From the sequence record PP885688.1: 64,000 nt of DNA; one strand, 5' to 3'. The position numbers were made by a program, and so were the translations under genes. Shown piece after piece: positions 33,885-44,271 of this stretch. The notes under the pieces are model-generated. The model ran no database searches, was not told the DNA's origin, and saw nothing but the letters and a program-made list of their open reading frames with translations. Positions within the stretch are counted from its first letter, which is position 1. Every line of letters starts with the position of its first letter.

Positions 33885-35600
33885 ATGCGTACGTACGGCA
33901 CAATCACTCACGACCTAAAGAACAAACGCTGGCTCATCAAGTGTGAGCCGCATGTCGTGATGCGCCTCAAGCGCGTGTTCGGCAAGATCGACAAGTCGGA
34001 TCACGGCGTCCTGAAACTCTCCGCGACCAAGGAGAACAGCCGCGATCTGGAATGGTTCATCGAGCGCTATCCGATGGAGGTCAGCCCTCCCGGTGTGCTC
34101 CGAGAGCTGTCACAGGCACACAAGGACAACGAGACCATCCTCGCCGCGCTCCTGGGAGGCCAGCAGAAGCCCCTCCAGATTGCTTTGAAGCTTCCGGCCC
34201 GTGACTACCAGGTCGAAGCCGCCAACATGTGGGAGATCGTCAAAGGCTACCTCCTGGGCGATGACGTTGGTCTTGGTAAGACCGCCAGTGCGATCGCTGG
34301 ACTGGTTCAACCCGGCAAGCTTCCCGCGCTCGTCGTGACGCTGACTCACCTCCCGCCGCAATGGAAGAGGGAGATCGAGCGCTTCACCGGCCTTGAGGTT
34401 CACATTCTCAAGAAGGGCACACCGTACGACATCACCAAGTATCACGGTGGCCGATTCCCGGACATCATCGTCTCGAACTATCACAAACTTTCCGGATGGG
34501 TCGACACTCTTGCCGGTCTCGTGAAGGCCGTTGTGTTCGATGAGGTGCATGAGCTCCGGAACACAGGCAGCGCCAAGTACGCTGCCGCGAAGTTCATCGC
34601 TGACTCTGTGGAGTTCAAGCTCGGCCTCTCTGCCACACCGATCTTCAACTACGGCAGCGAGATCTACAACATCCTCAACGTGCTCCGTCCCGATGCCCTC
34701 GGGACCTATGAGGAGTTCTATCGCGAGTGGTGCACCCAGACCTATGGCGGTAAGACGCTCATCAAGGATCCAGCTGCTTTCGGTCTCTATCTTCGTGAAG
34801 CCGGTCTCATGTTGCGCCGCACCCGACTCGACGTGAGGAGGGAACTCAAACCGATCACGGTGGTTCCTCACACTGTCGACGCTGACCCCAACGTCATGAA
34901 GACGATGAAGGGTAAGGCGATTGAGCTCGCCAAACTTGTTCTCTCCCAGGGCGAGGCCTTCAAGGGCCAGAAGATGCAGGCCGCCGGTGAGTTCGACGTG
35001 AAGATGCGTCAGGCCACTGGAATCGCCAAGGCCCCGTATGTCGCGGAGTTCGTCAAGTTCCTGCACGAGGAGTGTGGAGAAAAGATCGTCCTCTTCGGCT
35101 GGCATCGTGAGGTCTACGAGATCTGGATGGAGCAGCTGCGGGATCTGAAGCCGGTCATGTATACGGGCTCAGAGTCAGCCGCCCAGAAAGAAGTATCCCG
35201 CAAAGCCTTCATGGAGGGAGACTCCCAGGTCCTCATCATCAGCCTTCGCTCCGGCGCTGGACTCGATGGTCTGCAGGACGTCTGTAAGATCGGCGTCTTC
35301 GGAGAGCTCGACTATTCGCCCGCTGTACACATACAGTGCGGTGGCCGTATTCACCGTGACGGACAGGACGAACCCGTCATCCTTTACTACCTCATTGCAG
35401 ACTCGGGATCTGACCCAGTGATCAGCGACATCCTTGGTGTCAAGCGTCAGCAGTTGGAAGGTATCAATTCGCCTAAGCCGGAGTTCATCGAGAACCTGCA
35501 GGTCGAAGCGGACTACATAAAACGTTTGGCACAAGACTTCCTGTTGAAGAACGGGGAGCAGCTGCCGGAACCAGAAATCACACAGGAGAGTGCAGCATGA
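33885..35600 (+). CDS. SNF2-family helicase/ATPase
   Basis: DDVGLGKT, FDEVH, LSATP, LRRT, GAGLDGLQ, QCGGRIHRDGQ. Confidence 0.92.
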   Translation: MRTYGTITHDLKNKRWLIKCEPHVVMRLKRVFGKIDKSDHGVLKLSATKENSRDLEWFIERYPMEVSPPGVLRELSQAHKDNETILAALLGGQQKPLQIALKLPARDYQVEAANMWEIVKGYLLGDDVGLGKTASAIAGLVQPGKLPALVVTLTHLPPQWKREIERFTGLEVHILKKGTPYDITKYHGGRFPDIIVSNYHKLSGWVDTLAGLVKAVVFDEVHELRNTGSAKYAAAKFIADSVEFKLGLSATPIFNYGSEIYNILNVLRPDALGTYEEFYREWCTQTYGGKTLIKDPAAFGLYLREAGLMLRRTRLDVRRELKPITVVPHTVDADPNVMKTMKGKAIELAKLVLSQGEAFKGQKMQAAGEFDVKMRQATGIAKAPYVAEFVKFLHEECGEKIVLFGWHREVYEIWMEQLRDLKPVMYTGSESAAQKEVSRKAFMEGDSQVLIISLRSGAGLDGLQDVCKIGVFGELDYSPAVHIQCGGRIHRDGQDEPVILYYLIADSGSDPVISDILGVKRQQLEGINSPKPEFIENLQVEADYIKRLAQDFLLKNGEQLPEPEITQESAA

Positions 35601-36013
35601 AATTTTTCAGTCTCAAGATCGGTGAAACCTTTTTCATCGAAGAAAAGAAGAACGGTAAAGTAACCGGCACCACCACCGCAACCAAGACCTCGGCCCTCGG
35701 ATACACCATGGTCGGCGAAGAGGTTCTCGGCGAACACTCGATCGAGCCAATGACAGACGGCAAGATTGTCACCCAGGCAGAGAAGAATCCGAAGCCTGCA
35801 GCAGCCCCGGCGTTCGCCTCCGTCAAGCAGGTACCGATCATTGGTAAGCCTCCCGTGAAGGGTGTAGCAACCGCACGTCCGGCATCCCCCAAGGCTTCCG
35901 TGCCCAAGGTCGCTGTCCCGGTCGTTGCTCCGAAGCCCGCTGCAAAGAAGGCACCAGCGAAGAAGGCTGCTGCCAAGAAAGCGCCTGCAAAAAAGAAGGC
36001 CGCGAAGAAGTAA
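35597..36013 (+). CDS. Histone H1-like, Lys/Ala/Pro-rich protein
   Basis: C-terminal PAAKKAPAKKAAAKKAPAKKKAAKK after a small globular N-terminus. Confidence 0.7.
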   Translation: MKFFSLKIGETFFIEEKKNGKVTGTTTATKTSALGYTMVGEEVLGEHSIEPMTDGKIVTQAEKNPKPAAAPAFASVKQVPIIGKPPVKGVATARPASPKASVPKVAVPVVAPKPAAKKAPAKKAAAKKAPAKKKAAKK

Positions 36014-37874: not shown

Positions 37875-38360
37875 ATGCGGGTCGTCGTCGACAAGCACGA
37901 AGAGAAGAAGTTCCGGAGGCGAGCACTCAGCCACATGCCGAACGAGTACATGGAAGTGATGTATGGATATGTCGAAGGCGACACCGTAGTGGTCTGTGCC
38001 TTCGTCGATATCGATCACGAAGGGACCCCGAAGTCGATTGCTTACGATCAAGAAGAGATCGAGCGGCAGAAGGGACTCGCGGAGAAGAGCGGGCTCACAC
38101 TACTCGGCACGATCCACACTCACCCAGACCGCGAAGAGGGGATCTACAGCGAGTGCGATGCGCGTGACTCCTACCACAACGAAGAGAAGTTGTTCGCGAT
38201 CTGCAGCATCCACACGAAGTCAGGGAAGCGCAGGACTGTGGACATCTGGTACTGGCCCGGAGTGACACCGCTCGAAGTGGAGTACCGCGAGACTGTGTCG
38301 ACGCCGGAAGCCGACCGAGCCCGTGAGCGCCGCCTTCTCAACAAGGAAAGCAAGGTCTGA
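37875..38360 (+). CDS. JAB/MPN (JAMM) metalloprotease domain protein
   Basis: NEYME ... IHTHP-x7-S-x2-D JAMM-like motif. Confidence 0.8.
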   Translation: MRVVVDKHEEKKFRRRALSHMPNEYMEVMYGYVEGDTVVVCAFVDIDHEGTPKSIAYDQEEIERQKGLAEKSGLTLLGTIHTHPDREEGIYSECDARDSYHNEEKLFAICSIHTKSGKRRTVDIWYWPGVTPLEVEYRETVSTPEADRARERRLLNKESKV

Positions 38361-38391: not shown

Positions 38392-39729
38392 ATGAAGTCA
38401 GGTTTGCTAGGTAGGAAAGTTGCGGGAGATCCCAATGAGGCCCCCGCCAGCTCACAAGAGATTAGTTTTCAGGGCGTTCCCGTGGTCATCGAGTGGCCAG
38501 AGGGATCCACCCGCTCCGGAACGGATGCACAGGGCCAGCCATGGCAGACAGAGATGGAGGCCGGTTACGGTTACATCCCTGACACCGTAGGCGCTGGCGA
38601 CCACGAGAATCTCGACTGCTACGTCGGTGACGACGAAGAGGCTCCGGAAGCCTATGTCATCGAGCAGCTCAAGGAAGATGGCTCGTTCGACGAGTACAAG
38701 ATCATGCTGGGCTTCGCGGACGCCGAACAGGCGCTCGGGATCTACCAGAATCACTTCCCGAAGGTCTGGGAGTACGACCGCGTCGGCGGTATATGGGGCT
38801 TCCCGGTCAGCCGTCTTGCTGCTCTGGTCGATGGCGAGCAGACCGTCGTTGAGCAGGAGACCGAAGAGAAGGCCGACGAGCTGGAGAAGACCGCCGCTCC
38901 TGTCAAGAAGGCTCCTCCGGCAGAAGGTGCAGAGAAAGCCAAGCGTGGCCGGTACCCCAAGCCGCAAGGTTATCGTCCTCTTCTTCAGAGAGCAAACGCC
39001 AAGACAATCAAGGGCGAGAAACTCGGGTACTTGACCGGCATCCTCTACCTCGCTCCGGCGCTTGAGGCCGGTGGACGTGATCTCTGCCCCGGTCGTAGTG
39101 CGCAGTGCACGATGGGCTGCCTCTACGACGCCGGTCGCGCCGCGACCTTCCCAGCCATCAAGGCAGCCCGCATCGCCAAGACGAAGTTCTACTTCAACAG
39201 CCCCGAGCAGTTCGTTGAGGCGCTCAAGTGGGACATCGAAGCTCTGGAACGTAAGGCTGACCGTGATGGTCTCATCCCGGCTGTTCGCATCAACGGAACG
39301 TCGGACATCCCGAAGCTCGCACAGGCGATGGCGCAGGCATACCCGCACATCCAGTTCTACGACTACACGAAGCTGGCCAAGGCTCACCGTCGCGTTACTG
39401 ACAACTACCACCTGACCTTCTCTCGTTCTGAAGACAATGAAGAGCACGTGAAGGAAGCCCTCGCCAACGGCATCAACGTGGCGGTGGTATTCAACGTGAA
39501 GCCCACTGAGGACCTCCCAACGACCTTCATGGGTCACAAGGTCATCAACGGCGACGAGCACGATCTTCGCTTCCTCGATGAGCAGGATGGCGGCAAGCCG
39601 GTCATCGTCGGTCTCCGCGCCAAGGGCCCAGCCAAGAAGCTGGAGAAGCTTGAGAACAGCTTCGTCGTCCGCGTCGAGGACCTGATGAACGGTTCCGGCT
39701 CCACCCTGCCAAGCACACAGGTCGCCTAA
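38392..39729 (+). CDS. Fusion of inorganic-pyrophosphatase-like domain and Gp88-like domain
   Basis: N-terminal YGYIPDT..D...LDCYVG..YVIEQ..FDEYKIMLGF; C-terminal LCPGRSAQCTMGCL, RINGTSDI, FYDYTK, HLTFSRSE, NVAVVF, DLRFLD. Confidence 0.7.
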   Translation: MKSGLLGRKVAGDPNEAPASSQEISFQGVPVVIEWPEGSTRSGTDAQGQPWQTEMEAGYGYIPDTVGAGDHENLDCYVGDDEEAPEAYVIEQLKEDGSFDEYKIMLGFADAEQALGIYQNHFPKVWEYDRVGGIWGFPVSRLAALVDGEQTVVEQETEEKADELEKTAAPVKKAPPAEGAEKAKRGRYPKPQGYRPLLQRANAKTIKGEKLGYLTGILYLAPALEAGGRDLCPGRSAQCTMGCLYDAGRAATFPAIKAARIAKTKFYFNSPEQFVEALKWDIEALERKADRDGLIPAVRINGTSDIPKLAQAMAQAYPHIQFYDYTKLAKAHRRVTDNYHLTFSRSEDNEEHVKEALANGINVAVVFNVKPTEDLPTTFMGHKVINGDEHDLRFLDEQDGGKPVIVGLRAKGPAKKLEKLENSFVVRVEDLMNGSGSTLPSTQVA

Positions 39730-39786
39730 CCAACAACGCGGCAAGCAACGGTAACGGCGGTGTGAGTCATCCACCGCCGTTTATCG

Positions 39787-42700
39787 ATGGAGCGGAAGTA
39801 CATGGCAAAGAGCAGGCTTCTCAAGAAGGCCACCGAGTTCGCATCTTGGTATGGCGTTGACCTCGACGGCACCATGGCGGTCGCCCAAGATCCCTTTGAC
39901 CCTCTGACCATCGGTGTGCCGATTCCCGCTATGATTGAGAAGGTCAAGCAAGGGATTGCTGACGGACACACCTTCAAGATCTTCACCGCCCGCGTCGCCG
40001 ACGAAGACAAGGCAGAAGCTATCAAGCAGGTCATCGGGGACTGGACAGAGAAGCACGTGGGCACGCGGTTGGAAGCAACGAATGAGAAAGACCCAGGCAT
40101 GATTGAAGTCTGGGACGATCGCGCCCGTGCGGTCGAGAAAGACACCGGCGAGTTCGCTAAGGTAGCTCGCGAAGGCCTCGACGAGAACGGTTTCTGGTCC
40201 GGAGACAACGGAGCCAGCGGCATCCTACCGATCGCCCGCGACACCAAACGTATCTGCCTCGCCTGGCGCTCTATCGAAGTTCAGACCGGCGAGTGCTGGG
40301 GAACCATAGGCGGCGCTTGCAAGGACGGCCTATCGCCCGCTGACAGTGCTAAGGCTGAGATGGCAGAAGAGACCGGCTACCACGGCGGCGTCGAGCTTCA
40401 TCCCGCGTACGTGTTCACTTCCGGTTCGTTCAAATACCGCAACTACATCGGCGTCGTAGACTCCGAGTTCGACTTCAACCCCGGCGACGAGCATGGCTGG
40501 GAGACCGACTACATCGAGTGGAAGACGCTGGCGGAAATTCAGGAAGAACTCGAGAGTGAGCCCGGCAACTTCCACCCGGGAATGATCTCACTGTTCAAGC
40601 AGTCAGCGGATCTCATCGAGCGCTTAGCTGGCAGCGCAGAGCCGAAGAAGGCCAGCACCACCACCTACGGTCCTGTCTATCACGGAACCAAGGCAGAGTT
40701 TTCAGCCGACCAGATCCATCCTGGCCCCGAAGGCCTCATCTGGTTCTCCGACAGCCGCGACTTCGCTGAGCGCTGGGGTAAGAACATCGTTGAGGCGGTT
40801 ATCACCATCACTCGTCCCGAGGAGTTCATAGACTCAGGTCTGCACATGGCGATGTTGGACGATTCCGAGGAGGTCGCCGAGATCGGTAAGACATGCGACG
40901 GAATCATCGTCTCGAATCCCTCAGACCCATCACTACCGACCAACTACGCTGTGTTCTCTTCCAGCCAGGTCAAGGTGACGCCTTCCGCTGAGATGTCGAA
41001 AAGCGCAGCGAACCAACAAGCCGTAATCGATACACCACAGTTCAAGGCATGGTTTGGTGATTCCCAGGTGGTTGACGCCGCAGGAAAGCCGTTACTCGTG
41101 TACCACGGAACTGACAACCAATTCGACATCTTCGACCCTAAAAGAGCAGGAACGGGAAATGATCGGGGCATGCGGGGGCGCGGCTTTTATTTCTCCCCTA
41201 ATGAGAGAACAGCTGCATCGTATGGAGCCAACGTAGTACCGGTTTATGTGTCCATCAAGAACCCATTCAGACCTTCCGACTTCAATTCTGAGCAGGATAT
41301 GGCTGAGCGATTGGGCATTGATGAGGGCATTTTTGAGTACACCAAAGGTGGCGAATTCAAGGTGTACCAGCCGTATAGCGGGGTATTCACTAGTGCGCTA
41401 AAAGATGCTGGTTATGACGGGGTGCTCTACCCGCCCAGGCAAGAAGTTATCGCCTTCGAATCTAGGCAGATAAAGTCCGCAACTGGAAATAGTGGCGCAT
41501 TTGATTCTACGAACCAGAGTATTCTCGCAAGTCTAAGAGAGCTCACCTTCGAGAACGATGTCACCGACTCCTACCGTGGTGAGACCTTCGCCAACGTGTA
41601 CGCGCGTGATGCTCGGGGTAAGGTCGTGGGTAAGATTGACTACAGCATCTACGACGACGAGATCCACATCAAGATGGTTGAGGTCGCCAAAGGCTACCAG
41701 CGGCAGGGAATCGGCACCCAGCTGATGAACAAACTGCGTGCTGAGAATCCCGGTACACCCATCGACTGGGGCATGCTTACCGGAGACGGTGCGGCATTCA
41801 AGAGCAAGGTCCATCAGGAATCAGACGCACCACCGAATCGCCTGCTGCAAGAGATCGAAGCTCTACGTCCCGAGTTGGCGAAGGATGCCCAACACACGAT
41901 CGATGAGTGGCCGCTGCCGCAGTATGAAGATCAGGCTGAAGGCGTTGGTGCATTCATCGCGAGCGAGCTGAAGTTCGTCATCAAATCGAACACGAGCGGC
42001 TATCCATACGAGACCGTTCAAGGCCTCGATCAGGTGCTTGAAGTAGAGAACACACGCGGTGAGAAGGTCTTGGTGTCGCTACCTTCCCAGGTATTCGAAG
42101 AGAAGGTGAGTGATCACTGGCAGGTAAAAACAGGAGTGACGATTCAGCCGAGTGACTTCATCATCACGGTTGACTCTAACCCCGACGGGAAGACTGCACG
42201 GGCGATAACAGCTCAGCCGGTGTTTCACGGATCTCCTCACAAGCTCACCTACTTCACCACGAAAATGATGGGGAGTGGCGAGGGATCGCAGGTGTTCGGC
42301 TGGGGCATGTACTTCGCTGGTGCCAAGGATGTGGCGGAACACTACCGCAAGACCACCTCCGACTACGCCTATTCAGTGGATGGCTTCCCCATCGCAAAGC
42401 GTGACCACTACATGTATGGCGTTGCACAGGACATCGCGATGAATGGTGAGTGGGAGGCAGGAATACATGCCCGTGATAACGGTCGTGAATGGCTCGTGGC
42501 CTTCGAGAAGATGAAGGGCAAGAAGGTGGAGGAGAGTCGCGGCGGATTCCTCTATGAAGCTGAGATTCCGGAGGACGATGTCATGCTCGACTGGGATAAG
42601 CCCCTCTCGACACAACCACCTGTCGTCCAAAATGCTCTGCGATCAGCCGGGGTGTTGGACGTGGTCGGTGAGATCGCCCAGCATGAAGAAGGCTACTTTG

Positions 42701-44271
42701 TGGTCACGGTCAATGGGAAGAAGGATGGGACCGCAGACACCAGGCAGGACGCAGAAGAGATACTCCAGGAACGGGCCTATGGTCAGGCGATCTATAAAGA
42801 CCTATCTTCCAAGCTCGACGACCGTACCGGTGAGAAAACGTCAAAATATCTCCACTCGCTTGGGATCAAGGGCATCAAGTATTTGGACGCTTACAGCCGA
42901 TCACTGGGACACGGTACCCACAACTACGTCGTCTTCGATGATGCGGATGTGACGAACGTGAGACAGGTCGTTACCTCATCAAAGGCTGCGGCCACATTTG
43001 ACTCCGACTTCGACCAGGCTCAGAAGATCGCTGACGAGTTCGCACCCCAGGGACTCACCATCATCCTCCGCGAGACCTACTCTGCGATCCGCATACAGAC
43101 GCTGAAGCCCACTCCAGAGGCAACTGATCAGGATCTTGGTAAGAAGTTCATGGAAGCGCTGACGGAATACGCTGAGCTCGTAGGAAAGACGATCTATATC
43201 AGCCCTAGCTCTGGTTATCAGGAGCGTGCATCGGGCGGCGTAGAGACCATTCAGCGCGTGGCGAGCCCAGACTTTGATTACTCCCAGTACACCGACCGCG
43301 ATACAGATTTGAAACGGATCACATGGATGATTACTCCGTTTAGGTCTCCAGGTTTCGAGCTCACGGCTTACTACACCCCCAAAGGACGCAACCCGCAGGG
43401 ATCGGCGGTCGGTTCGATCAAGTGTGACTACTACCCCAACGGTGACGGTGGGGCGGACAAAGAAGGTGTCGTCTACTCCAGCATCGTCAACTTGAACAAA
43501 GACTGGCGTGGAACCGGTCTCGGTCAGATGCTCTACGACAAGGCGATTGCACACGCCAAGAAGCTCGGAGCCCGCTGGTTCTCTTCTGACGTCTCCCTCA
43601 CCAATGCCGCCGTGTCCGCATGGAAGCGAATCAGTCTTCGCTATCCAGTTGAAGAGCAGCTGGGTGCAGCCTACAACTCTGAGGTAGGTGAGGACGACGA
43701 CGATGAAGCCATCTCCGGCTATCGCATCGATCTCTCCAAGGTGACGGCACCGGCGAAGGTGGCTTTTCTCCATGGCGCAACGCCCGAGCTGCAGGCCATC
43801 GTCAAGGACTACGAGTCAAAAGGTCTACAGTTCTCGATCAGCGAACAGCCAGAGCGCATCACTCTGTCAGAGATCCGCGTACCTAAGGAGAACCGGCAAC
43901 AAGGTCTTGGCTCAGCATTCATGACGGAGCTCGGGACGTATGCAGACGTCGCGAACAAACCCGTGTTCTTGACACCGTCGAAGGACTTCGGTGCCAGCTC
44001 GGTTGCACGTCTACGTGATTTTTACGGCCGCTTTGGCTTCAAGATGAACAAAGGCCGCCACAAGGACTTCTCTTCCATGGAGGCGATGGTGCGTCAGCCG
44101 AAGAGTACGAAGGCGCTAACCGCCGGTATCGGCAAGAACCCTCCTGGCAAACCTGAAACCGTCTACCCAGAGCGCAGTAACGGATGGGCCCTCAATCCGG
44201 ATCAGCGCGGCGACAGCACAGCGCCGTCACTCGCACAGCTCCTGCCGGAAGAGCTCAAGGCTTCTTCTTAG
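39787..44271 (+). CDS. Polyvalent effector protein (1494 aa): HAD phosphatase, NUDIX, three ART-like domains, several GNAT-like domains
   Basis: VDLDGT (HAD); WGTIGG..AEMAEETG (NUDIX); VYHGT/VYHGT/VFHGS with YF and YxVF strands (ART-PolyVal-like); QRQGIG, RGTGLG, RQQGLG (GNAT acetyl-CoA motifs). Confidence 0.85.
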   Translation: MERKYMAKSRLLKKATEFASWYGVDLDGTMAVAQDPFDPLTIGVPIPAMIEKVKQGIADGHTFKIFTARVADEDKAEAIKQVIGDWTEKHVGTRLEATNEKDPGMIEVWDDRARAVEKDTGEFAKVAREGLDENGFWSGDNGASGILPIARDTKRICLAWRSIEVQTGECWGTIGGACKDGLSPADSAKAEMAEETGYHGGVELHPAYVFTSGSFKYRNYIGVVDSEFDFNPGDEHGWETDYIEWKTLAEIQEELESEPGNFHPGMISLFKQSADLIERLAGSAEPKKASTTTYGPVYHGTKAEFSADQIHPGPEGLIWFSDSRDFAERWGKNIVEAVITITRPEEFIDSGLHMAMLDDSEEVAEIGKTCDGIIVSNPSDPSLPTNYAVFSSSQVKVTPSAEMSKSAANQQAVIDTPQFKAWFGDSQVVDAAGKPLLVYHGTDNQFDIFDPKRAGTGNDRGMRGRGFYFSPNERTAASYGANVVPVYVSIKNPFRPSDFNSEQDMAERLGIDEGIFEYTKGGEFKVYQPYSGVFTSALKDAGYDGVLYPPRQEVIAFESRQIKSATGNSGAFDSTNQSILASLRELTFENDVTDSYRGETFANVYARDARGKVVGKIDYSIYDDEIHIKMVEVAKGYQRQGIGTQLMNKLRAENPGTPIDWGMLTGDGAAFKSKVHQESDAPPNRLLQEIEALRPELAKDAQHTIDEWPLPQYEDQAEGVGAFIASELKFVIKSNTSGYPYETVQGLDQVLEVENTRGEKVLVSLPSQVFEEKVSDHWQVKTGVTIQPSDFIITVDSNPDGKTARAITAQPVFHGSPHKLTYFTTKMMGSGEGSQVFGWGMYFAGAKDVAEHYRKTTSDYAYSVDGFPIAKRDHYMYGVAQDIAMNGEWEAGIHARDNGREWLVAFEKMKGKKVEESRGGFLYEAEIPEDDVMLDWDKPLSTQPPVVQNALRSAGVLDVVGEIAQHEEGYFVVTVNGKKDGTADTRQDAEEILQERAYGQAIYKDLSSKLDDRTGEKTSKYLHSLGIKGIKYLDAYSRSLGHGTHNYVVFDDADVTNVRQVVTSSKAAATFDSDFDQAQKIADEFAPQGLTIILRETYSAIRIQTLKPTPEATDQDLGKKFMEALTEYAELVGKTIYISPSSGYQERASGGVETIQRVASPDFDYSQYTDRDTDLKRITWMITPFRSPGFELTAYYTPKGRNPQGSAVGSIKCDYYPNGDGGADKEGVVYSSIVNLNKDWRGTGLGQMLYDKAIAHAKKLGARWFSSDVSLTNAAVSAWKRISLRYPVEEQLGAAYNSEVGEDDDDEAISGYRIDLSKVTAPAKVAFLHGATPELQAIVKDYESKGLQFSISEQPERITLSEIRVPKENRQQGLGSAFMTELGTYADVANKPVFLTPSKDFGASSVARLRDFYGRFGFKMNKGRHKDFSSMEAMVRQPKSTKALTAGIGKNPPGKPETVYPERSNGWALNPDQRGDSTAPSLAQLLPEELKASS

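Follow-up and report, generated by a model that had tools for sequence, protein, structure and literature searches.

A Lys-x-Ala motif at the module seams of two polyvalent proteins of Tunturiibacter phage Tunturi_5: candidate cleavage code of a phage-G-type prohead protease

What separates the modules of the long proteins encoded by genes 272 and 273 of Tunturiibacter phage Tunturi_5, and could a short motif at their seams be a protease signal? The 5.9-kb stretch carrying both genes (positions 38392-44271 of the window, that is, of the whole 64,000-nucleotide stretch of DNA analysed) shows 100% identity to this phage (PP885688.1), a 308,711-bp jumbo myovirus from soil with a G+C content of 58%, for which an acidobacterium served as the host for isolation. 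Base 1 of the window is base 186001 of the record. An earlier note had read Lys/Arg-x-Ala at the domain junctions as a candidate cleavage signal of jumbo phage head proteases. We find that K-x-A, followed preferentially by Ala or Ser, is a real motif under selection. Our preferred reading, to which we give a probability of roughly 0.58, is that a phage-G-type prohead protease cleaves at this motif, between Ala and the next residue, and that an S-(K/R)-L-L leader goes with the code; the head-maturation protease is the probable enzyme because the motif lies at the seams of the two polyvalent proteins and accumulates in head proteins of this phage and its relatives, phage G among them.

Gp272 and gp273 qualify as polyvalent proteins as defined by Iyer et al. 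(2017), since each chain combines several unrelated domains and the signature domains ART-PolyVal and InPase are present. Gp272 matches InPase (PF18823, 6e-34) and GP88 (PF17338, 4e-41); gp273 matches NUDIX, three ART-PolyVal (PF18760, 3e-42), three or more GNAT and a HAD-like PHROG. The module order of gp273 is leader, HAD-like, NUDIX, small ART, ART-PolyVal, GNAT+X, third ART, a module of unknown function, GNAT, GNAT and a C-terminal tail. Iyer, Burroughs, Anand, de Souza and Aravind (2017) proposed that such proteins enter with the DNA and are cut into units by a built-in zincin (PMC5512222). The zincin (MPTase) domain is common in the class without being needed for membership, and a Pfam search found no peptidase (zincin/MPTase) domain in gp272 or gp273. 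Five further polyvalent proteins of Tunturi 5 lie outside the window (gp225, which adjoins a portal gene, gp321, gp205, gp203 and gp350); of gp272, gp273 and their paralogue gp321, only gp321 has such a domain, a SprT-like zincin (PF10263). The features of the two proteins are as follows, residues of gp273 being counted from the start of the open reading frame (ORF) at 39787.

38392..39729, + strand: gp272, a two-domain polyvalent-type protein with InPase at about residues 22-128 and GP88 at about residues 197-412
38392..38424, + strand: leader M-K-S-G-L-L-G-R-K-V-A of gp272, closed by K-V-A at 38416-38424 (RKVAG string)
38887..38913, + strand: linker between the InPase and GP88 Pfam envelopes, with K-T-A-A at 38887-38895 (EKTAA) and K-K-A-P at 38905-38913
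39802..44271, + strand: gp273, a 1,489-amino acid polyvalent protein; ORF open from 39787, annotated start 39802
39823..39831, + strand: site 1, K-K-A then T (LLKKAT, K13), closing the gp273 leader M-A-K-S-R-L-L-K-K-A (39802-39831)
40159..40167, + strand: site 2, K-V-A then R (FAKVAR, K125), HAD-like/NUDIX seam; block edges at 122-133
40645..40653, + strand: site 3, K-K-A then S (PKKAST, K287), NUDIX/small ART seam
40999..41007, + strand: site 4, K-S-A then A (MSKSAA, K405), preceding ART-PolyVal; alignments with the paralogue and with relatives begin 3 residues upstream of the motif
42190..42198, + strand: site 5, K-T-A then R (DGKTAR, K802), GNAT+X/third ART seam; block edges at 802-809
42982..42990, + strand: site 6, K-A-A then A (SSKAAA, K1066), seam of the third ART and the 91-amino acid module of unknown function; block ends at 1056-1059
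43255..43263, + strand: site 7, R-V-A then S (IQRVAS, R1157), immediately before the GNAT module that starts S-P-D-F-D-Y
43756..43764, + strand: site 8, K-V-A then F (PAKVAF, K1324), seam of the last two GNAT modules; block edges at 1316-1324
44116..44268, + strand: conserved C-terminal tail of gp273, about 45 amino acids (..P-P-G-K..Y-P-E.S-N-G-W-A-L.P-D-Q-R..)

All ten strings quoted in the earlier note are thus present where it had placed them. [KR]-x-A occurs 18 times in gp273 and 12 times in gp272, so the ten strings are a chosen subset; and as the loose pattern is common and the strict form K.A[AS] is not significant in gp273, the quoted list alone proves little, and independent boundaries were therefore used. 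The codons at the sites vary (GCC, GCG, GCT, GCA) and differ from site to site, which argues that selection acts on the protein; DNA microhomology for domain shuffling at the seams is ruled out by the same differences.

Multi-module relatives (P0003-P0013) were found by word search, and the edges of their BLASTP blocks against gp273 were taken as boundaries. Of 54 such edges, 54% lay within 10 residues of K.A, compared with 15% under random placement (p<0.0005), and K.A ranked top among 55 equally frequent a.b patterns. The placement of the motif at domain junctions, as proposed earlier, is borne out by these edges. Relatives P0003-P0012 carry the same modules in other orders, again with K-x-A at the module edges; P0006, on a 303.5-kb contig, also has a matching gene neighbourhood. 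In five of six relatives the HAD-like module follows a K-x-A (K-T-A-A, K-T-A-S or K-V-A). At site 2 the relatives have K-A-A, K-T-A or K-V-A; at site 3, after NUDIX, K-T-A-A, K-Q-A-S, K-K-A-S or K-E-A-A; at site 5, K-T-A-K or K-T-A-A; and at site 8, K-V-A-G or K-K-A-V. The GNAT module behind site 7, where Tunturi 5 has Arg, is directly preceded by K-x-A in seven of its nine copies in relatives (the module starting S-P-D-F-G in five of these, and M-P-D-F-G or D-V-G-Y in one each). A search of IMG/VR for close orthologues of gp273 gave a match confined to the last GNAT module.

Cutting gp273 at the sites leaves one Pfam domain per piece, with the ART domains beginning 7-8 residues past a site. 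In the paralogue gp321, all four strict sites (residues 473, 730, 910 and 1046) fall between Pfam domains. An AlphaFold model of gp273 residues 1-1200 was of low confidence (mean predicted local distance difference test score, pLDDT, of 50), with confident blocks only at about residues 41-100, 141-283, 585-796 and 1073-1134; the ART modules were uninformative in it. All seven sites within this range lie at pLDDT<50, site 2 in a stretch from 100 to 140, and the limits of confident blocks (residues 283, 796 and 1073, respectively) are 4-7 residues away from sites 3, 5 and 6.

One further K-S-A, at window 41473-41481 (+ strand), deserves separate mention. ART-PolyVal modules, those of the paralogues included, finish with a conserved Q-(I/V)-K-S-A-x-G-N-x-G-x-F, and this copy, about 10 residues after which the next module begins, probably belongs to the domain family and is not a lineage-specific site.

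The strict pattern K.A[AS] was then counted in 307 called ORFs of Tunturi 5 and compared with shuffles within 15-residue windows, which keep the local composition. The polyvalent and head sets were fixed beforehand. The counts were:

Seven polyvalent proteins: 27 observed, shuffle mean 9.7, z 5.6
Head module gp328-336: 20 observed, shuffle mean 5.4, z 7.5
Late genes beyond 298 kb: 15 observed, shuffle mean 3.7, z 5.8
Forty tail, baseplate and fibre ORFs: 13 observed, shuffle mean 10.8, not significant
Remaining 285 ORFs: 79 observed, shuffle mean 59.9, z 2.2

The highest-scoring single proteins were gp328 ('DNA ejection protein'), gp350 (DarB-like), gp348, the scaffold-like gp332 and gp345. 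Permuted patterns, R.A[AS] and E.A[AS] showed no comparable enrichment with the same local shuffles. The motif must be narrowed to K-x-A with Ala or Ser preferred next: Arg as a general alternative was rejected, R-x-A being enriched nowhere. Nor was the x-x-Glu type of T4 and phiKZ found, E.A[AS] being without enrichment. When 5,622 patterns of the form a.bc were scanned without bias in the polyvalent, head and late set, K.AA came first (z 8.6) and K.AS second (z 8.1); in the remaining proteins they ranked 23rd and 1099th.

Gp269 (window 35597-36013, + strand) has a Lys/Ala/Pro-rich, histone-H1-like tail, P-A-K-K-A-A-A-K-K-A, which raises the K.A[AS] count of the non-structural set.

The same concentration is seen in Bacillus phage G, whose genome is Ala-poor and has a G+C content of 30%. 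Its head module (26 ORFs, 3.9-25.2 kb) has 19 copies of K.A[AS] against 5.2 expected (reached in 0 of 500 shuffles), while the other 642 ORFs have 71 against 63.4; three of its five highest-scoring ORFs encode the portal (gp14), the protease (gp19) and gp7. Head modules of IMG/VR relatives gave observed/expected counts of 23/8.2, 15/4.3, 25/7.4 and 17/5.7, with two weaker. Among polyvalent proteins, close relatives are enriched (e.g., 11 vs 2.9 in P0006), a 455-kb relative has a 3,659-amino acid polyvalent ORF in which the excess is only modest (7 vs 2.9), and about 100 distant polyvalent proteins of other phage groups show no enrichment of K.A[AS]. The motif therefore belongs to the lineage and is a trait neither of polyvalent proteins as such nor of the ART domain. 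In the cluster C mycobacteriophage Bread the signal was weak and ambiguous, K-x-A and [KR]-x-A-[AS] being mildly enriched.

In gene 97 of Mycobacterium phage Bread (L061:7013-11122) the protease domain forms the N-terminus of a 1,369-amino acid protein, which is preceded by a 1,276-amino acid ORF.

The gene annotated as the head maturation protease of Tunturi 5 matches PHROG 18299 ('head maturation protease') at 3.8e-13. Capsid and protease are 38% and 28% identical, respectively, to those of phage G, and 47% and 43% identical to those of the 485-kb metagenomic phage LR745208; more distant relatives of both occur in cluster C mycobacteriophages and related Gordonia and Rhodococcus phages. The protease family was aligned with 17 relatives (15 from IMG/VR, loci L010-L024, plus phage G and LR745208), and three K-x-A sites bracket the conserved core across it while the surrounding residues vary.

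Record 277718-278581, outside the window: gp331, annotated head maturation protease, just upstream of the scaffold-like and capsid genes
Protease site 1, right at the N-terminus: F-K-K-x-A, with P-L-K-T-A in Tunturi 5 and V-K-I-A in phage G
Protease site 2, near residue 33: K-[T/S/N/Q]-A-[A/S]
Protease site 3, C-terminal to the core, around residue 265: K-x-A-S, present twice in phage G

Such flanking is the arrangement that would be expected for self-processing, by analogy with the SPN3US protease. The N-arm of the capsid protein carries K-S-A-A and Q-K-L-A-A-S, the latter retained in all relatives but phage G. The family has invariant His51, His105 and Ser162 (numbering of L015, the first sequence of the alignment) and E-x-S-W-V-x-x-P-A-F. 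These residues are compatible with a protease of the HK97/assemblin type, though no proof of it. Pfam matches of the family at E<=10 comprise only zinc-ribbon hits and, for one relative, Peptidase_S78_2 (E 0.2).

A feature unusual for prohead proteases is an invariant C-x-x-C...C-x-H insertion in the catalytic core of the family (gp331 and L010-L024), to which weak zinc-ribbon matches correspond.

The first K-x-A of gp272 and gp273 closes a leader, S-(K/R)-L-L-x(1-3)-(K/R)-x-A, which occurs within the first 8-12 residues of five otherwise unrelated Tunturi 5 proteins (gp272, gp273, gp205, gp220 and gp195; record 147269, 159796 and 139994 for the last three) and of the relatives P0003, whose N-terminus reads M-A-R-A-K-L-L-R-K-A-A, and P0005. 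As the gp273 leader matches these relatives, 39802 is supported as the true start. A leader-like element also lies close to the C-termini of gp203, gp225 and gp321. The leader recalls the capsid-targeting sequence of phage T4. The C-terminal tail of gp273 recurs at the extreme C-terminus of P0003, P0004, P0005, P0007, P0008 and P0010, irrespective of the modules that precede it; there is no second copy in Tunturi 5. Perhaps it may serve as a packaging or anchoring signal.

The most likely mechanism, modelled on T4 and phiKZ/SPN3US-type phages, would run as follows. Gp272 and gp273 are effector chains of InPase, GP88, HAD-like, NUDIX, three ADP-ribosyltransferase-like and three to four acetyltransferase-like modules, parted by the lineage-specific Lys-x-Ala, usually with Ala or Ser next, the first signal being preceded by the leader S-(K/R)-L-L-x-(K/R)-x-A. 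The leader would carry the proteins into the prohead, where the prohead protease, presumably a serine protease of the HK97/assemblin type, would cut after Ala (P3 = Lys, P1 = Ala, P1' = Ala/Ser). The cuts would strip the leader and part at least some of the modules, and at infection these would pass out of the head along with the DNA. Besides these two proteins, the motif accumulates in the scaffold-like gp332, the ejection-type gp328, the N-arm of the major capsid protein and further late head proteins. We infer the packaging and cutting of gp272 and gp273, the exact bond and the use of every junction.

The idea of a head-protease signal thus finds backing in an order-specific enrichment in head, ejection and polyvalent proteins, in the flanking of the protease core in 17 relatives, in the restriction to the head module in phage G and in seams that are kept in relatives with shuffled modules. 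Several observations weigh against it. At four of the eight gp273 sites the residue after Ala is T, R, R or F, and gp273 has three copies of the strict form where 1.7 are expected, a difference short of significance. The genes for gp272 and gp273 sit among replication genes, away from the head module, and the late gene set was delimited after the ranking had been seen. In phage G the capsid protein is without the N-arm motif, and the other two ORFs of the top five, actin-like and BNR-like, are unrelated, their high scores probably being due to chance. Gp331 matched nothing in Pfam at 0.01 and nothing in a PDB sequence search, and an AlphaFold model from nine sequences of its family (pLDDT 39) left the protease fold unconfirmed. 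Known prohead proteases mostly take off N-terminal propeptides and do not dissect proteins into many mature parts (PMC10052503). Finally, the isolation paper of Tunturi 5 contains no proteomics and does not discuss a protease.

An unlikely alternative is that the motif is selected yet never cut, acting as a linker, as a docking element for the scaffold, the capsid interior or DNA, or as a folding mark, with gp273 working as an intact 165-kDa protein. The enrichment and conservation results all show selection on the motif and not proteolysis, and some large virion proteins, e.g. the virion RNA polymerase of N4, are packaged unprocessed (PMC5512222). The bracketing of the protease's own core and the clustering of the motif in N-terminal regions of head proteins speak for cutting instead, this being the pattern of autoprocessing and propeptide removal of T4 and SPN3US-type phages, and a P3-x-P1 triplet followed by a small residue is typical of protease subsites.

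Cutting by another peptidase is less probable still, be it the SprT-like zincin (MPTase) of gp321, the JAB protein gp271 or a host protease. According to the proposal of Iyer et al., polyvalent proteins are processed by MPTase domains (PMC5512222), and gp321 has one. Gp271 is a minor candidate; in one relative, the 303.5-kb contig (L062), a JAB gene adjoins InPase and polyvalent genes. However, it is in head-module proteins that the motif accumulates, and phages of different host phyla have it flanking the prohead protease, which ties it to the head protease gene and not to accessory peptidases. Characterised JAB peptidases cleave after the C-terminal Gly-Gly of ubiquitin-like proteins, a specificity which counts against gp271.

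37875..38360, + strand: gp271, Prok-JAB protein (JAMM metallopeptidase-type; PF14464, E 1.5e-9, above cut-off) with a visible HxHxx...SxxD motif

That chance and composition explain the sites, Lys and Ala being common in linkers of a phage of 58% G+C and fitting examples having been picked, is hardly credible: the abundance of [KR]-x-A in gp273, the lack of significance of the strict motif there and the small excess of K/A/S patterns in the rest of the genome would suit it, but it is largely refuted by the local shuffles, the permuted patterns, the unbiased scan, the low-G+C phage G and the conservation at aligned positions.

Cleavage by the phage-G-type prohead protease would place Tunturi 5 beside known systems. 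The T4 prohead protease recognizes L/I-x-E, and the T4 head carries the ADP-ribosyltransferase Alt. As in T4 (gp21) and in phiKZ/SPN3US-type phages (gp175, gp245), a three-residue motif is common to the capsid protein, scaffold or internal proteins and the protease; these phages also have short N-terminal leaders that are removed and enzymes borne in the head, of which the Tunturi 5 counterparts are predicted from sequence alone. Giant-phage prohead proteases cut at a P3-x-P1 motif, A-x-E in SPN3US, and cut themselves (PMC10052503). The T4 and SPN3US motifs finish in Glu, whereas that of Tunturi 5 is K-x-A followed by A or S; and whereas the former proteases cut mostly at N-terminal propeptides, the sites described here lie between up to ten enzyme modules. 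The signal is lineage-specific and not general to jumbo phages, the known code of the latter being x-x-Glu (PMC10052503).

With the polyvalent proteins of Iyer et al., gp272 and gp273 share the architecture, the signature domains (ART-PolyVal, InPase, NUDIX, GNAT) and a predicted delivery together with the DNA. For that class, processing by a built-in MPTase has been proposed, whereas gp272 and gp273 are without one and bear at their seams the motif of a head-protease lineage.

Phage prohead proteases are regarded as relatives of herpesvirus assemblin, whose maturation and release sites are (V/L/I)-x-Ala, cut before Ser. The format is the same as in Tunturi 5, i.e. a P3 residue, any residue, Ala at P1 and Ser or Ala at P1'; P3 is hydrophobic in assemblin and Lys in Tunturi 5, and homology of gp331 to assemblin could not be shown. 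A prohead-protease motif, a leader and packaged enzymes are therefore of an already known kind. What is new is the specificity, the lineage and the motif at seams of polyvalent proteins that have no peptidase of their own; a literature search found no description of this specificity, of the lineage code or of its use at seams.

If the assignment is true, the proteins loaded into the heads of phage-G-like jumbo phages, and their trim points, would be predictable from sequence through the leader and the sites. Polyvalent proteins without a peptidase would gain a processing route other than that proposed in 2017, and Ala at P1 with Ser/Ala at P1' would tie the specificity of a phage protease to the format of assemblin. 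Going further, it is possible, and we suggest it only tentatively, that one lineage code both matures the capsid and dissects packaged polyvalent polyproteins into up to ten injected enzymes in phage G, Tunturi 5, several metagenomic phages of 0.3-0.5 Mb and perhaps the cluster C mycobacteriophages; this would amount to a viral polyprotein strategy within the head of a tailed phage. The prediction can be tested directly, since cultures of both Tunturi 5 and its host are available and virion spectra of phage G exist; the 2025 phage G paper reports detection at the protein level only.

Two annotations of the record are at variance with the domain matches. That of gp271 as 'minor tail protein' is wrong, its product being the Prok-JAB protein listed above. 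Gp90 (record 68759-69988) is annotated 'major head protein' and its Pfam matches are to AAA/BCS1-type ATPases; the real capsid protein is gp334 (record 281069-282028).

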